Below, piece after piece: positions 4,739 to 32,443 of a DNA stretch of 32,443 nt. A program made the translations under genes and the position numbers. Within the stretch, counting starts at the first letter, position 1, and the number at the start of each line of letters is the position of its first letter. Location: the sequence record BK067788.1; one strand, 5' to 3'. The notes under the pieces are model-generated. The model was given only the letters and a program-made list of their open reading frames with translations, was not told the DNA's origin and searched no databases.

Positions 4739-4953
4739 ATACTAGACTGAAAATCTGGTGTTTATATTTATTGTGTATCTTATTTCATGGTACTATGGCA
4801 TATTGCATATGGGTTGCCATGCTTGTGATATTTCTTTAATGATTTGGTAACACTTCCGATACACTCATCAAACTTTTCTGGTAATTTTATCACCTCGCTT
4901 GTTTGCCAAAAATCCTTTTCCTTTTCCTAGATCGATTACTGTTATTTTAAAGG

Positions 4954-6876
4954 TCATAGTATTCTAGAACGTTTTGATTGTACGAATCTTCCAGTAGATT
5001 GTTTAGATTGTTCGGATTCTGATTTAGATATTGTTCTTTGAGAATAGCTTAGCTCACTTCTTTTATAGGTTCCAATTATACTAGCCTCAGGTACGTTACC
5101 AACAAATTCTCGTCTAAAGCCTCCCTTGCTTACTTTGCCAACTAGCCCCCCTCCTCCACCTACTCCTAAGACTCCTAGATCCGGTGGTCTTTTTTTATCT
5201 GTGGTTGTCTCTCCTGGTGGTGGAGTTTTGGTTGGTGGTGGTGTTGGTTTTGGTGGAGGTGGAGATGGATTACCTGGAATTTTTGTAACTGTCAATAAAT
5301 CAGTTATTCCAATTCCACCCTGATCCTGTTTTTGAGATTGTTTGGTTATAGTTATAGGAACTGGTGGAACTAGAGTTGGAAATGGTTTTGGTTTTTGTTC
5401 TGTTGTCTGTCTTGGTTTTAGAATTGGAACTGGTGGTACTGGTGTTTGTTTTTGTTCTTGCCTTGGCTTTCCAGGTTCTTTAATATATCTTAATCCAGTT
5501 CTTTCTATCAAAGATTGTTCTTGTTTTGCTTTTAATTTTTCTTCTGTCTTTCCAGTTTGTTCAGTCTTTGCTTTCTCCTGATCCTTTAGAAACTGTTCTT
5601 GTTTGGATAATTGTTTCTGTTCAAATTCTGGTTTTTGTTTTTGAACTGTTTTGGTAACTTGTTTTTCTCTTACTATTTGTTCTAATCCTTTTCCGGCTGA
5701 AACTGTCTTTTCTGTTGGAGTTGTAGGAGGTCTGCCAGTTCCTTCTAGGATTCCAGTACCACCCTTGCTACTTGATACTACTTTACCTGGTCCCACTCCT
5801 AACTTTACGGTTATCTCTGGTGTTGGTGTAACTTCTTTGCCTTGTCTTGCCATCTCAGGCGGTGGTGATTTCATCTTTTCATTTATCATTGACTGGATAT
5901 TCTTTTCAGTCCTGAACTTGTCGGTATATTTTGGAACATTAAGGCCAATATCTGAAGTGCCAACTTTGGCACCTGTCTCGGCTGCTTTTGGTGCTTCCTT
6001 TGCAAATGCCTTTGTAAAGAAACTGGATATTTCTTTCCCGGCTGATATTGCACCTTTTTCTAGAGAACCTATTGGTACAAATGCAAATACATCAGCTAGA
6101 CTTGTAGAAGGTACTTCTCCCCCTTGGGCTTTTTGTCCTGAAAATGGAACTTTAAGAAAACTAGATGCTTCACCTGTTTGTTTTTCAGATGTCGGTGTAA
6201 ATGTTTTGAATGTCTTTCCAAACAAAGTTGTTACTCCTGTTTCGCTTTGTGTTGTTTTTGTAGAAGGTACTACTTGGACAGTTGTAACTTTTTCAAGTGG
6301 TGGTAATCCTTGACTTGCCCTTAATGCGTTTGTCTTGTCTAGATTTGCCTGTGTTGCCCTTATTACTGGACTTGGACCTGATTTCAATACTGTTGTAGGT
6401 TGTGAAGTTTTTTCTGTTGTTTGTGGCATTACTGCGGTTCTCATTTGAGATATAGGAGTACCAGACACAGGAGTTCCGAATGATATTCTTCCTCCTCCTT
6501 GTGTCATTGGCAATACTGGTCTTTCCATCCTTTGACCTTGCGATGTAACAAAACTATTTGGCACTGGTGTTCCAAAGGAACCATAAGAAAATGATCCTGA
6601 TTTTATTGCAGCTTCTCTAGCTTGTGCGAATCTGTCATTACTTGAACCTACTCTTGAAACATGCTCTTCTACCATTCTTTGCTGTTCTATCTTTTGTGCT
6701 TCTGCTCTTACTGCTGCCTCTTCCGGTGTACCTGTCTTTATAGCACTAGGAGCTTGCTGTCTTTGTTCTTGTGTTGCCTGGTTTTCTCTTTGTGCAGCTA
6801 AGAGCCGTGCCTGTGCTGCCGCCTTTTCTGTTGGTGATGCGGGCTGAAATTGATTAGAACCTCCATAAGTTACCAT
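4954..6876 (-). CDS. 640-aa low-complexity, Pro/Thr/Gln/Lys-rich, probably disordered protein
   Basis: Long ORF; PPPPKPTPPPTKTPPPG, poly-Gly and EQK-rich segments; no TM or signal peptide seen. Confidence 0.75.
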   Translation of the reverse strand: MVTYGGSNQFQPASPTEKAAAQARLLAAQRENQATQEQRQQAPSAIKTGTPEEAAVRAEAQKIEQQRMVEEHVSRVGSSNDRFAQAREAAIKSGSFSYGSFGTPVPNSFVTSQGQRMERPVLPMTQGGGRISFGTPVSGTPISQMRTAVMPQTTEKTSQPTTVLKSGPSPVIRATQANLDKTNALRASQGLPPLEKVTTVQVVPSTKTTQSETGVTTLFGKTFKTFTPTSEKQTGEASSFLKVPFSGQKAQGGEVPSTSLADVFAFVPIGSLEKGAISAGKEISSFFTKAFAKEAPKAAETGAKVGTSDIGLNVPKYTDKFRTEKNIQSMINEKMKSPPPEMARQGKEVTPTPEITVKLGVGPGKVVSSSKGGTGILEGTGRPPTTPTEKTVSAGKGLEQIVREKQVTKTVQKQKPEFEQKQLSKQEQFLKDQEKAKTEQTGKTEEKLKAKQEQSLIERTGLRYIKEPGKPRQEQKQTPVPPVPILKPRQTTEQKPKPFPTLVPPVPITITKQSQKQDQGGIGITDLLTVTKIPGNPSPPPPKPTPPPTKTPPPGETTTDKKRPPDLGVLGVGGGGGLVGKVSKGGFRREFVGNVPEASIIGTYKRSELSYSQRTISKSESEQSKQSTGRFVQSKRSRIL

Positions 6877-27156: not shown

Positions 27157-27219
27157 GTATTGTTTTTAGAAAAATGTCATACATAAAGCTTTAGTAATGG
27201 TTGATTATTAGTCATATTA

Positions 27220-28949: not shown

Positions 28950-30083
28950 TTAATTAGTTATATCATTATTTAATTGTTCTGTCGGTAATAATTGATCAAT
29001 AGGCGTGGTTTTATCATCGTCAGACAATACTCCATCAAGCATTTTTTTAAGCTTGGTTCTTGTTATTTTGAACCCATAATGAGTAGCTATGTCTTCTAGT
29101 GATATTTCCTTCTTATCTAATGCCTTGTATAGATACTTTTTGCATGTAACAATAGGCTTTGAATAAACATTAATGCCATTTTCCATCATTATTAGCTTGC
29201 ATGTTGCTCTAACTACATATTCAGTGAATTTCTTATTTGTTTCGTTAATGAACTGATCTACTGGAATTTCACTAAAATATAATTTTTTATTGGCTAGGCT
29301 GCAAATAGAGCATATTTTATCAATCCATTCCCTAACAGGAAATATAACATATCTTAACGAACTGTTATTAAAAAACAGGCATACCACGAATGGGTTCTTG
29401 TAATTGTATATGAAAAAGCCTTTAGCTGCAAAGGCAAATGTACATTTCTGTTTTGATGTCATTTCTACATATTTTTTCTCAAAATCTTCTATTTTGCTTG
29501 TGTATCTAGTTCCAACTATATTTATCATGTTTTCCTTCTCACTTGAACCAATAGAGGTAAAAAATCTAAAATTTGCTTGTCTTAGATACTTGTCAAGACC
29601 TAACGTATAATGATAATCATAAATTAGGATGATCTTGTAATCTCCATTTTTCAGGTGTCGTATTTTGGTTACTGCATTTTTTACTTCTTCTATGGCCTTT
29701 TTGTTTGCCAGGAAAGATAGGTCATGAAAATACAAAATATAGTTTGCTGGATCTAGAGCTTCCAGAGTTCCTTTCATATCATAAAACTCTTCCTCTCCAA
29801 ATTCTCTATAAGCAAAAGGTACGCATCCTAGAGACTCACTCATTTTATGGATCAGATGTGCGCATGTTTTAGCCAATGAAGTTTTACCTGTTGAAGGTTC
29901 GCCCACTATACCTACCTTTACAACATCCAGGGATTTTGTAGTATTGAGTATTTCAGTTATAGCAGCTCGTAGGCTATGGTTCCTGATCATATCACAGCCT
30001 TTCCATTTTATTACAGTTGGTGCATTCTTCTTGGATAGATGATCGGGGTTTTGTAATTGAACCTCAACATGTCTGATAACCAT
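28950..30083 (-). CDS. P-loop ATPase (viral AAA-like; packaging or replication role unresolved)
   Basis: Walker A GEPSTGKT, Walker B ILYFHD; C-terminal CSIC and HTH-like SLEDIATHYG. Confidence 0.8.
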   Translation of the reverse strand: MVIRHVEVQLQNPDHLSKKNAPTVIKWKGCDMIRNHSLRAAITEILNTTKSLDVVKVGIVGEPSTGKTSLAKTCAHLIHKMSESLGCVPFAYREFGEEEFYDMKGTLEALDPANYILYFHDLSFLANKKAIEEVKNAVTKIRHLKNGDYKIILIYDYHYTLGLDKYLRQANFRFFTSIGSSEKENMINIVGTRYTSKIEDFEKKYVEMTSKQKCTFAFAAKGFFIYNYKNPFVVCLFFNNSSLRYVIFPVREWIDKICSICSLANKKLYFSEIPVDQFINETNKKFTEYVVRATCKLIMMENGINVYSKPIVTCKKYLYKALDKKEISLEDIATHYGFKITRTKLKKMLDGVLSDDDKTTPIDQLLPTEQLNNDITN

Positions 30084-30673
30084 TATGTATCTAATTCCTC
30101 TCCTGTCTTTCCTTCAAGTTGTTCTAATTCTGATCCATCCTTGGGAGTATAATCACGCCTGAACTTTGCAGCCTTGGCCTCCAATTCATCTAGTAACTTC
30201 CAGCACCAATTCTGGAATTTAATATCAAACTGTCTGCGGTCTGTAAGACTGTCCTTTCGTTCTGGTGGCTTTGGTACTATCCCTAAGAAGCTAGGTTCTT
30301 CAAGTTGATACTTTATCATCTCAGTTTCTACCAGACGGTTTACATGGTTACACTTGCCACAATGCCAAACCTTGTCATACTTTTCTTTGGTGAATACTCC
30401 AATGATTAATGGATTTAGAAGCTTCTCAATCTGCATATCTTTAACCTCTATCTCTTCATCACAGTACGGACATTTGGCGTTTAGCTTCTCTTGTGTCTTG
30501 GCCTCATATTCTATTGTGGATATTTTAACTCTATAATCTTCAGGCAAACATCCGTTGAAAGCATACAAGGAACCTACTGCGGCATCATATCTTCCATTTT
30601 CCATATTGAAGATAGCCTGATTTCTATACTTGATGAAAGCGGTATTAATATCAGGTAAAGACGCTTGTGGCAT
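30083..30673 (-). CDS. Zn-ribbon-containing protein co-transcribed with the ATPase
   Basis: KCPYC...WHCGKC; TAATG coupling. Confidence 0.7.
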   Translation of the reverse strand: MPQASLPDINTAFIKYRNQAIFNMENGRYDAAVGSLYAFNGCLPEDYRVKISTIEYEAKTQEKLNAKCPYCDEEIEVKDMQIEKLLNPLIIGVFTKEKYDKVWHCGKCNHVNRLVETEMIKYQLEEPSFLGIVPKPPERKDSLTDRRQFDIKFQNWCWKLLDELEAKAAKFRRDYTPKDGSELEQLEGKTGEELDT

Positions 30674-30674
30674 T

Positions 30675-31133
30675 TTATGAAATCCACTCCAAAGTCATAG
30701 ATTTTCTAAATGGTCTTAAGCGTTGATTTTTATTAAAACATATTCTACAAGCTCTTTTACCTCTACTAATTTCATATTTAATAAGATTATCACCTTCCAA
30801 TAAATGACCACTTGGACAATACTTTTTTGCTTTGTTTATTGCTGAGAATCCGATTCCTCTACTAGCATTAACTCCTTGTGTAACTGCTTCCAAATGATCT
30901 GGATTTACACACGAGTAATTACCACACAGGTGATCTATAACCAATCCCTGAGGTATCTCACCTTTGAATAACATATAAGATAGTCTATGGGCAAAGAAGA
31001 ACTTACCTCTTACATATAATACTCCATATTGTAACCAGTTCTTTGCACCTATCCATGACCAACAATAAGTATCTTCATCAAATCTAATCTTAGATAGTAA
31101 TTGATTAGGTAAGATGGCATATCCCTTTTGCAT
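30675..31133 (-). CDS. HNH homing-type endonuclease (HNH_3-like), paralog of 24301..24786
   Basis: CWSWIG...AHR...GEIPQGLVIDHLC...CVNPDHLEAVTQ; KYCPSGH...RACRIC. Confidence 0.85.
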   Translation of the reverse strand: MQKGYAILPNQLLSKIRFDEDTYCWSWIGAKNWLQYGVLYVRGKFFFAHRLSYMLFKGEIPQGLVIDHLCGNYSCVNPDHLEAVTQGVNASRGIGFSAINKAKKYCPSGHLLEGDNLIKYEISRGKRACRICFNKNQRLRPFRKSMTLEWIS

Positions 31134-31190
31134 AATGTTCCTTCTGACCTATAGATAAAAAGATTTTCTTTCTTGAGAGAACCCTTACCT

Positions 31191-31228
31191 ATCCCTAAAA
31201 TGTTAAACAATCCTTAAAATGTTAAAAT
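31191..31228 (+). repeat. Two tandem 19-bp imperfect repeats (ATCCYTAAAATGTTAAA..)
   Basis: atccctaaaatgttaaaca / atccttaaaatgttaaaat. Confidence 0.8.
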
Positions 31229-31246
31229 CATGCCTAAATTAATTCA

Positions 31247-31276
31247 TTTATCACATTGTACCAACAATGTTAAAAA
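31247..31276. other. Candidate recombination core site (12-bp arm, 6-bp spacer, 12-bp arm)
   Basis: TTTATCACATTG-TACCAA-CAATGTTAAAAA; 10 of 12 positions pair; 21 nt upstream of the recombinase ATG. Confidence 0.45.
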
Positions 31277-31297
31277 CATCCTTGATTATTCCATTAC

Positions 31298-31912
31298 ATG
31301 CAAGCTAGAACCAACTACATAACCCCTGATCAGTTCAAACAATTGATTGATGGAGTAGATACATTAGAACTTAAGAAGTTTAATCATGAGGATGTAAAGA
31401 TGTTATTCAAAGTTTGTTATTGGATGGCACTTAGGATAGGAGAAGCTTTGAAGATTAATGTGGAAGACTTTGATTTTGAAGTTATGCAAGTATATCTAGG
31501 AAAGACCAAGACAGAGAAACAAGGATTTGCCAAGATACCAGAGGTATTTAGATTAGAGTTATTGGAATACCTACTAGATAAGAAAGGTCCATTGTTTCCA
31601 GGCATGAATAGATTTATTGTTTCTTATTGGTTAAAGACTCTAGGTAAGCGTTACAAGATAAAGGCTTTGACTACTTCACAAGAAGATACCGAAGAAAAGA
31701 CAATCACCCACATCTTTAGAAAATCAATGGCTAAGGATATGTTCTATGGTATACATGGAGAGAAAGCACCTTTGACCTTTGTTTCTGATACTTTAAGACA
31801 TAAGGGTAAGAATAGACTTGCAGCTACACAGGAGTATCTTAAGATAACAGGCGAAGATCTAGATGATTTTTGGAAGCGTATAGCTAAGAAAGAAGAAGAA
31901 TCTCAGGTATGA
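31298..31912 (+). CDS. int: Minimal tyrosine recombinase/integrase
   Basis: Catalytic set R (ALRIGE), K (KTK), HxxR (HIFR), H (LRH), Y (TQEY); 204 aa. Confidence 0.9.
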   Translation: MQARTNYITPDQFKQLIDGVDTLELKKFNHEDVKMLFKVCYWMALRIGEALKINVEDFDFEVMQVYLGKTKTEKQGFAKIPEVFRLELLEYLLDKKGPLFPGMNRFIVSYWLKTLGKRYKIKALTTSQEDTEEKTITHIFRKSMAKDMFYGIHGEKAPLTFVSDTLRHKGKNRLAATQEYLKITGEDLDDFWKRIAKKEEESQV

Positions 31913-32169
31913 AAGTAATCAAACTTGTTATCTCTTCTCTTTAGTCTTTGCTCTGTTAGATACCTAGCAATACGATACAGGCCATTGAACTTTACTCCCC
32001 ATATCAGGAATACGCCTAGACCAATGTTTAGAAAGTCTTGCCAGTTCCAATGAAACCAAGGAACGATAAAGTTTAGGCTTGACATGACAATCATAAAGCC
32101 TGCACCGATTAGGTATAGTCTGGAATGCTTGATCTTGATGTTTTCATTGTCTTTCCACTTTCTAGTCAT
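31903..32169 (-). CDS. Two-TM membrane protein, convergent with the integrase
   Basis: Two hydrophobic helices; 10-nt 3' overlap with int. Confidence 0.65.
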   Translation of the reverse strand: MTRKWKDNENIKIKHSRLYLIGAGFMIVMSSLNFIVPWFHWNWQDFLNIGLGVFLIWGVKFNGLYRIARYLTEQRLKRRDNKFDYFHT

Positions 32170-32290
32170 TATCTATACCTCAATCTAACATCTGATTTTT
32201 TCTTTTTGGTTTCTTTACTATAATCTATTGTAATTATAACAGCCATCTCTTACTTGTTTCACTGTTCCAGTAATGATAAGTATTTCTATT

Positions 32291-32443
32291 TCAGTTTACC
32301 AGGTCTTCAATTGTATTTCGTTGTTCAATCCATGTCTTATAAGGCAAGTGCAAGACTTTCTTAACTTTTCTTATGCGGTCCTGTCTTTCCCAAACTTGTC
32401 TTTGTTTCTTTTTCAATAGTAACAGTCTGACTTGTTCATGCAT
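32291..32443 (-). CDS. 3' part (50 aa) of the protein starting at 186 if circular, or a standalone small ORF
   Basis: MHEQVRLLLLKKKQRQVWERQDRIRKVKK...DLVN*. Confidence 0.6.
   Translation of the reverse strand: MHEQVRLLLLKKKQRQVWERQDRIRKVKKVLHLPYKTWIEQRNTIEDLVN

Follow-up and report, generated by a model that had tools for sequence, protein, structure and literature searches.

A conserved repeat array upstream of a catalytic-domain-only tyrosine recombinase gene as a candidate divergent control region in the archaeal spindle-shaped virus NTM1

The DNA considered here, hereafter the window, comprises 32,443 bases and is identical to GenBank BK067788.1, the genome of Nitrosopumilaceae spindle-shaped virus NTM1, which originates from a rhizosphere metagenome and carries the name Terrafusivirus michiganense, family Nipumfusiviridae, in the ICTV nomenclature (PMC12451623). 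The genome is circular and complete, as its copy in IMG/VR carries direct terminal repeats. Within the window, the list of open reading frames (ORFs) and the annotation of the record place a gap of 164 bp (31134..31297) between a leftward replication-module operon, which in NTM1 includes an inserted HNH gene, and the plus-strand gene of a tyrosine recombinase of 204 amino acids (ORF79, 31298..31912; hereafter int, with Int as its product), a protein that consists of the catalytic domain only. The gap holds an inverted repeat and two tandem direct repeats, which a preliminary description of the locus had taken for a dif/att-like core site with arm repeats beside a minimal recombinase, with an autoregulatory operator as the alternative. 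The words "integrase" and "recombinase" are both absent from the paper that describes NTM1 (PMC10866085), and the family of approximately 200-residue recombinases of the Nipumfusiviridae is not mentioned there.

The inverted repeat occupies 31247-31276 and, as first cut, consists of TTTATCACATTG (31247-31258), TACCAA (31259-31264), and CAATGTTAAAAA (31265-31276), with arms that are complementary at 10/12 positions. The letters, places, and arm match reported earlier are thereby confirmed, but the 6-bp spacer is not a given; a repeat search resolves the palindrome best as 13-4-13, with arms at 31247-31259 and 31264-31276 (85 %) around the spacer ACCA, and because the arms extend to 13 nt around this 4-nt spacer, the 6-bp spacer is one choice among several cuts. 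The ACCA centre (31260..31263) is delimited by the repeat search together with the alignment with relatives, and a perfect 7-4-7 arrangement, ACATTGT-ACCA-ACAATGT, lies inside the NTM1 palindrome. The two 19-bp tandem units, both on the plus strand, are direct repeat 1 (ATCCCTAAAATGTTAAACA, 31191..31209, with the core AATGTTAA at 31199-31206) and direct repeat 2 (ATCCTTAAAATGTTAAAAT, 31210..31228, with the core ATGTTAAA at 31219-31226); they are alike at 94 % over 17 nt and, as had been described, share a word with the right arm of the palindrome, direct copies of the 9-mer AATGTTAAA beginning at 31199, 31218, and 31266. Only one further copy of the 9-mer is present in the 32.4 kb, and with three of its four copies in this gap, all three within 76 bp, it is ruled out as a genome-wide promoter word. 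An inverted repeat of at least 10/12 with a spacer of 4-8 nt arises in 8 % of 5000 dinucleotide shuffles of the 164-bp gap, and the palindrome alone is therefore not significant; a 9-mer with three copies arises in 0.5 % of shuffles of the same gap. At the same time, the whole NTM1 genome holds only six palindromes of a comparable kind, and the palindrome, treated as single-stranded DNA, folds with -5.9 kcal/mol (z = -2.6).

The gap of NTM1 was aligned with those of five relatives whose Int proteins are 67-84 % identical to that of NTM1 (L003, L053, L008, L054, and L055; together with NTM1 the close clade), and copies of the ten-mer at -34 were scanned with a cut-off of 8/10. Counted from the int ATG, the heptamer ATGTTAA lies at -101, -82, and -34 in the direct orientation (+) and at -48 as an inverted copy. 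The direct copies at -101 and -34 are present in 6/6 genomes, the core of direct repeat 1 (at -101) being invariant in all six, and the -82 copy, which is the core of direct repeat 2, is kept in five of the six and lost in L008. The inverted copy at -48 forms the left arm of the palindrome (31247..31259, minus strand); it is degenerate in NTM1, where it reads TTATCACAT, and in L054 (TATCAC), is TTAACAT in L003, L053, and L008, and falls under the 8/10 cut-off in L054 and L055. Between these inverted heptamers lies a 10-nt stretch of fixed length and variable sequence (TGTACCAACA, CTTATCGACA, CATATCGACA). Only NTM1 and L003 have a perfect inner palindrome; the other four genomes keep the outer ATGTTAA/TTAACAT, with 3-6 of the 10 central bases unlike NTM1. 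In terms of an 11-6-11-type site, the arms match at 10/12 in NTM1 and 11/12 in L003 around a 6-nt spacer, and the remaining four genomes have other bases in the inner parts of the arms and retain just the heptamers, at their distance of 10 nt. Because the positions of the motifs are fixed while the central bases drift, the repeats are under selection, and the perfect inner palindrome of NTM1 is not. Relatives at 45-55 % Int identity have the element at -30 and lack the four-copy array, and some distant relatives carry instead an inverted repeat, GTCTATT-N22-AATAGAC, that flanks the TATA box. The repeats are a real and conserved array of cis-elements.

Archaeal core promoters of leaderless mRNAs combine a purine-rich B recognition element (BRE) with an A+T-rich TATA box centred approximately 26-30 nt before the start point. 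NTM1 genes that are preceded by a gap show the consensus ACAA[TG]-N-TTTAWATA at -36 to -22 from their start codons; at least 12 genes other than int carry it, for example, ORF62 (AACAATGTTTAAATA), ORF11 (ACAATAAATATAAAC), and ORF13 (ACAATTCTTTATTTG). The right arm of the palindrome supplies the int gene with CAACAATGTTAAAAA at exactly -36 to -22 (31262..31276, plus strand), matching this virus-wide consensus, and when a matrix is built from twelve other promoters with int left out, 31262-31278 ranks 100 of 64,886 and is the top position in the gap. When loci of the recombinase family, 17 in number, are lined up by their ATG, they show peaks of information at -35 to -32 (A-rich) and -28 to -23 (T.AA.A), and the element ends 21-24 nt before the ATG in these loci despite diverged sequence in between. 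In position, consensus match, and conserved distance, the right arm fits the BRE/TATA promoter of int for a predicted leaderless mRNA. Toward the other end of the gap, a second BRE/TATA-like element, AAAATCTTTTTATC in the minus-strand reading (31154..31168), stands 20 nt before the ATG at 31133; the leftward block TATAGATAAAAAGATTTT is kept in all close relatives, and its distance to the ATG is that of other NTM1 promoters. Moreover, the inner ACAAT/ATTGT of the palindrome amounts to two BRE-like words back to back, for which there is a local precedent in the palindromic back-to-back TATA pair TAAAGCTTTA (27184-27193) between ORF69 and ORF70. NTM1 genes without a promoter-type leaderless start have GGAGG-type ribosome-binding sites instead.

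We consider, with a probability of about one half, that the 164-bp gap serves divergent transcription control and that its extra copies of the motif function as operators or as promoter-like sites, a reading supported by the promoter consensus, the fixed distance, the drifting centre, the subclade-specific array, and the lack of any sign of exchange. In such a region, which would control transcription of the replication and recombination module in both directions, CAACAATGTTAAAAA would be the core promoter of the recombinase gene, transcription would start at or beside the ATG to give a leaderless mRNA, and the second BRE/TATA element at the far end of the gap would drive the Zn-ribbon/ATPase operon. 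The other copies of ATGTTAA(A), two in tandem and one inverted, would offer additional places of docking through which the level or timing of int expression is set. These places may be occupied by the host TATA-binding protein and transcription factor B (TBP/TFB), as tandem or back-to-back promoter-like elements, or by a sequence-specific regulator in competition with TBP/TFB for the TATA box, which would make the repeats an operator array. DNA exchange at the site is not needed for what is seen, and of the possibilities raised in the preliminary description it is the operator that fits best. However, several observations weigh against a control region of this kind. Although divergence between the Int proteins of the six genomes reaches 33 %, ATGTTAA is exact in 17 of 18 direct sites, which is more than a TATA box needs and therefore points to a sequence-specific reader rather than TBP alone. 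No candidate regulator gene has been identified. With the promoter matrix, direct repeat 1 is modest (rank 544), and direct repeat 2 and the left arm lie outside the ten best positions of the gap. Finally, the NTM1 layout directly upstream of the recombinase gene is the layout of the internal resolution site (IRS) found in transposon Tn4430 (PMC2847244).

The gap holds one further conserved block, CATGCCT (31229..31235), immediately after direct repeat 2; L054 has CACGCCT at this place, and the reverse complement AGGCATG stands at the same aligned place in most relatives, for instance L003, L053, and L008. Apart from the TATA elements, no block of the gap is kept more widely than the form TAGGCAY, at approximately -70 from the int ATG. 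It lies approximately 30 nt past direct repeat 1, the place at which transcription from this repeat would begin. A small leaderless ORF beginning with the ATG at 31230 was rejected, as this ATG is missing in L008, L054, L055, and L006.

By its catalytic residues and its fold, ORF79 belongs to the tyrosine recombinase superfamily. PF00589 matches residues 7-180 with 37.1 bits, above its cut-off of 27.1, and is covered from profile position 2 to 165 of 172; phrog_216 and phrog_1 "integrase" also match, and the residues R46, K71, H138, R141, H168, and Y180 are invariant in 29 aligned homologues. The earlier statement that the enzyme is little more than a catalytic domain holds, an N-terminal domain being absent. 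A word search returned 31 homologues, all of 180-207 amino acids, and about 40 metagenome homologues fall in the same length range; because all homologues are of this size, confinement to the catalytic domain is a family trait and not a truncation. The gene is present in ten Nipumfusiviridae GenBank records (NTM1 counted) and in 41 metagenome contigs. The closest curated family is XerA NF040815 (E 9e-11, model positions 93-260 of 263), and the closest solved sequence is Pyrococcus XerA (PDB 4a8e); however, only the catalytic half of the XerA model is matched, and the score of 41.8 bits is far below the cut-off of 220. The comparison with XerA and SSV-like families that had been proposed thus ends with XerA as the nearest family, at a score that does not admit ORF79 to it, and the view that the enzyme is unlike SSV-type integrases is upheld by the family scan, in which PF00589 is the only Pfam match and the nearest profiles and structures are Xer-type. 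The AlphaFold model has a predicted local distance difference test (pLDDT) value of 92.6 and gives its best superpositions with isolated catalytic domains from two integrases, P2 and HP1, and with the XerH and XerA C-terminal domains. The fold matches include PDB 9rgl, SroF, a repressor of phage phi3T (rank 47), a sign that the fold can serve as a pure DNA-binding regulator; the recombinase here keeps all catalytic residues.

As the main rival, the same array may also be the recombinase's own target, a resolution site of the TnpI-IRS kind with autoregulation, a possibility that can be entertained tentatively. Strand exchange across the centre would be carried out by two recombinase molecules bound to the inverted pair, a further two on the direct repeats would act as a topological filter that favours the conversion of genome dimers into monomers, and occupancy of the right arm would shut the int promoter. 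The model for such a module is provided by the transposons Tn4430 and Tn5401, in which a site of approximately 100 bp, with an inverted pair, a 4-bp centre, two direct repeats, and a shared 9-bp word, directly precedes the recombinase gene. In Tn5401, the IRS overlaps the tnpI promoter, which TnpI represses; TnpI itself has approximately 284 amino acids and an N-terminal DNA-binding domain. In Tn4430, the site is composed of IR1 and IR2 of 14 bp with a 4-bp spacer and cuts 6 bp apart, together with DR1 and DR2, with a common 9-bp word (PMC2847244). The NTM1 array reproduces this layout, an inverted core and two direct repeats with one recognition word beside the gene, in that its 13-nt inverted motifs with a 4-nt centre are accompanied by two direct repeats sharing a 9-mer, and its conserved arms, variable centre, and fixed spacing have the look of a core site. 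The enzyme is catalytically complete, conserved (29 sequences), and Xer-like, and among single-recombinase Xer systems the sites are gene-linked, as stated for XerS/difSL (PMC2731167) and for XerH (PMC3325230). An intact and widely kept enzyme without integrated copies would therefore have a non-integrative job, such as resolving multimers of the circular genome, and dimer resolution would explain why the gene is kept in ten records; the histories of the left and right modules (below) are discordant. On the other side, the right arm is fully explained as a promoter, no comparable array lies upstream of int at 45-55 % identity, the heptamers are 10 bp apart with a 6-bp-spacer palindrome only in NTM1 and L003, and the left arm is the weakest copy in NTM1 itself. 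The likeness to Tn4430 is one of sequence layout, between an archaeal virus with a promoter-like right arm and a bacterial transposon, and the NTM1 enzyme differs in being a 204-residue catalytic domain only, which leaves it without a part for recognizing "arm-type" sites as distinct from core sites. Tandem repeats taken as arm sites in the lambda sense are not supported on this point, as the arm-binding domain that they need is absent from the protein. To our knowledge, there is no precedent for specific binding of four sites by a bare catalytic domain without partners. Each genome has one site; a scan of the circularized NTM1 genome revealed no second 25-nt core at up to 8 mismatches besides the palindrome's own reverse reading, and nothing credible among heptamer pairs at 6-12 nt, and the identity profile between lineages is a mosaic with no single switch at the core. 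Of the dif/att-like core proposed at the outset, the Xer-like enzyme and the IRS-like layout stand, while the promoter nature of the right arm and the poor conservation of the inner palindrome and centre tell against it. The most specific form of the resolution reading, in which a Nipumfusiviridae "mini-Xer" of the NTM1 lineage acts on an IRS-like composite site of approximately 90 bp that overlaps its own leaderless promoter, resolving multimers and regulating itself, is doubtful.

The remaining explanations are weaker. The repeats could be iterons of a replication origin bound by the Zn-ribbon protein or the ATPase, with the palindrome as an unwinding or loading element. Direct repeats with a palindrome in A+T-rich DNA are indeed typical of origins, and the gap adjoins the ATPase/Zn-ribbon operon, which is of the type tied to replication in spindle viruses (PMC10866085). 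However, the short repeats number no more than two or three, their motif falls on a promoter element, the array is lacking in distant relatives in which this operon is retained, and the GC skew tracks gene orientation with no clear switch at the gap, which together make an origin unlikely. The palindrome has also been proposed as the core of a viral attachment site (attP) for integration into an ammonia-oxidizing archaeon, whose chromosome would offer a short dif-like site outside tRNA genes. Integrases usually adjoin attP, and no piece of a tRNA is present, in agreement with the earlier remark; ARAGORN finds no tRNA in the window, and Rfam gives nothing in 30000-32443 at E up to 1. Among att sites of thaumarchaeal elements, moreover, lengths go down to 8 bp, and intergenic positions account for 15 of 68 (PMC8371274, PMC6563490). 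Against these points, a scan with family peptides of one genome for each of 185,579 species found no provirus, its single match being a 7.8-kb contig of viral type; the 41 metagenome contigs with the recombinase gene are all virus-sized (33 kb at most); no virus-host joint or loose end is listed at 31240-31280 in four metagenome runs, in contigs, which hide rare forms; scans of viral and metagenome contigs with the family profile likewise gave neither a provirus nor a host junction; the composite exact pattern of the three direct motifs has 0 matches in IMG/VR; and the describing paper reports no tRNA, spacer, or other sequence match to host genomes (PMC10866085). Because the central bases differ among close relatives, which would demand different host sites, an attP is weakened further. 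Integration at a dif-like site is therefore not borne out by any integrated copy with att repeats or host junction, the question of a host attB being judged from the absence of proviruses alone; we regard an attP core as very unlikely and integration as the least likely use of the site by the recombinase. Most improbable of all is that the repeats are a chance similarity in an A+T-rich spacer with no function past a single promoter: A+T-rich promoters do look alike, and the palindrome alone is matched in 8 % of shuffles, but a threefold 9-mer is rare in the same shuffles, its genome copies cluster, and the positions of the copies are fixed in six diverged genomes.

Resemblance to Xer/dif systems consists in XerA being the best relative in sequence and structure and in the presence of a palindrome in a circular replicon. 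The differences are that an N-terminal domain of approximately 90 residues is absent from the NTM1 recombinase, which scores far under the XerA cut-off, and that the 11-6-11 geometry seems loose in NTM1 and not kept in its relatives. We know of no dif sites with accessory direct repeats. The Escherichia coli XerD arm, TTATGTTAAAT, was given correctly, as the dif literature confirms, and shares ATGTTAAA with the NTM1 motif (8/11); however, the match coincides with the TATA box, and the resemblance is best explained by the presence of such a box in A+T-rich DNA. In Thermococcales, dif does not lie beside xerA (PMC2958812).

Two further systems invite comparison. The tyrosine recombinases FimB and FimE have approximately 200 amino acids and little beyond the catalytic domain; they invert the segment between two inverted sites, whereas NTM1 has a single site and does not qualify as an invertase switch of this type. 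SSV1 is likewise a spindle-shaped archaeal virus, and its small repressor F55 binds tandem repeats that overlap promoter elements. F55 down-regulates the integrase operon at its early promoter (PMC8371274), much as an operator upstream of int might be used. In contrast to NTM1, SSV1 integrates, the SSV integrase splits its own gene upon integration, and no F55 homologue was identified in NTM1.

To the left of the gap, the conserved minus-strand operon 28950..30673 comprises the genes of a Zn-ribbon protein (ORF77, 30083-30673) and a P-loop ATPase (ORF76, 28950-30083), both of them core genes of the virus family, and in relatives int diverges from this operon. We infer from synteny that ORF76 and ORF77 are the replication-linked ATPase/Zn-ribbon pair of the literature (PMC10866085). 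In NTM1, a gene for a homing-type HNH endonuclease (ORF78, 30675..31133, minus strand) is inserted exactly between the Zn-ribbon start codon and the Zn-ribbon promoter, as a homing-type insertion would be. Near-identical strains in three other metagenome runs have an HNH-less form in which 30672 is joined to 31146 with 14 other letters at the joint, and L003, L004, and L054 are also without the gene; the HNH gene is a presence/absence polymorphism.

The identities of the Zn-ribbon and Int proteins are discordant, at 83 vs 67 % between NTM1 and L054 and 46 vs 75 % between NTM1 and L008, and the two modules have passed from lineage to lineage, the boundaries of these exchanges lying within or close to the gap. 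From 31219 to 31255, NTM1 and L054 are identical at 36 of 37 nt, and they diverge after that. Site-specific exchange at the core between lineages is not claimed, as identity in a sliding 40-nt frame is a patchwork with no single switch at 31256-31264. Elsewhere, a gene of 636-640 amino acids and the small gene that follows it lie on the opposite strand in L003-L005 (L003 4286-6288, L004 3541-5543, L005 1608-3610), approximately 0.7 kb from int; the NTM1 counterpart (4868-6876) lies approximately 5 kb from int, with about ten small genes between. This inversion is not attributed to the recombinase, as no motif repeats flank the gene.

Marine and bay relatives within the Nipumfusiviridae carry many copies of an 8-nt palindrome, CTGTACAG, often in the divergent promoter beside int, with 7 copies in the 7.8 kb of L010 and 4 in each of L011, L020, L024-L026, L030, and L042; NTM1 contains no exact copy of it and no other over-represented palindrome. 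L010 (NYTT01000055.1), which encodes the recombinase and carries these CTGTACAG repeats, is filed under a metagenome-assembled genome of Flavobacteriales and is most likely a viral contig binned by mistake.

The Nipumfusiviridae were set up as a family in 2025 from metagenomes, the function of almost all of their genes is unassigned, and their hosts are ammonia-oxidizing archaea, a globally important group of nitrifiers. The genome yields a promoter consensus for these viruses, ACAAT-N-TTTAWATA, placed 22 nt ahead of the ATG. If the repeats are not the site of the enzyme, they would offer a well-defined viral operator with which to find a regulator. If they are, they would form a compact module for resolution plus autoregulation, with a minimal recombinase of possible value as a tool; it would be the first of its kind in an archaeal virus and would imply a tyrosine recombinase able to work without a core-binding domain. 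In either case, an intact, catalytic-domain-only recombinase beside a replication operon, present in ten records with no integrated copies found, provides a starting point for the biology of the viruses of nitrifiers.

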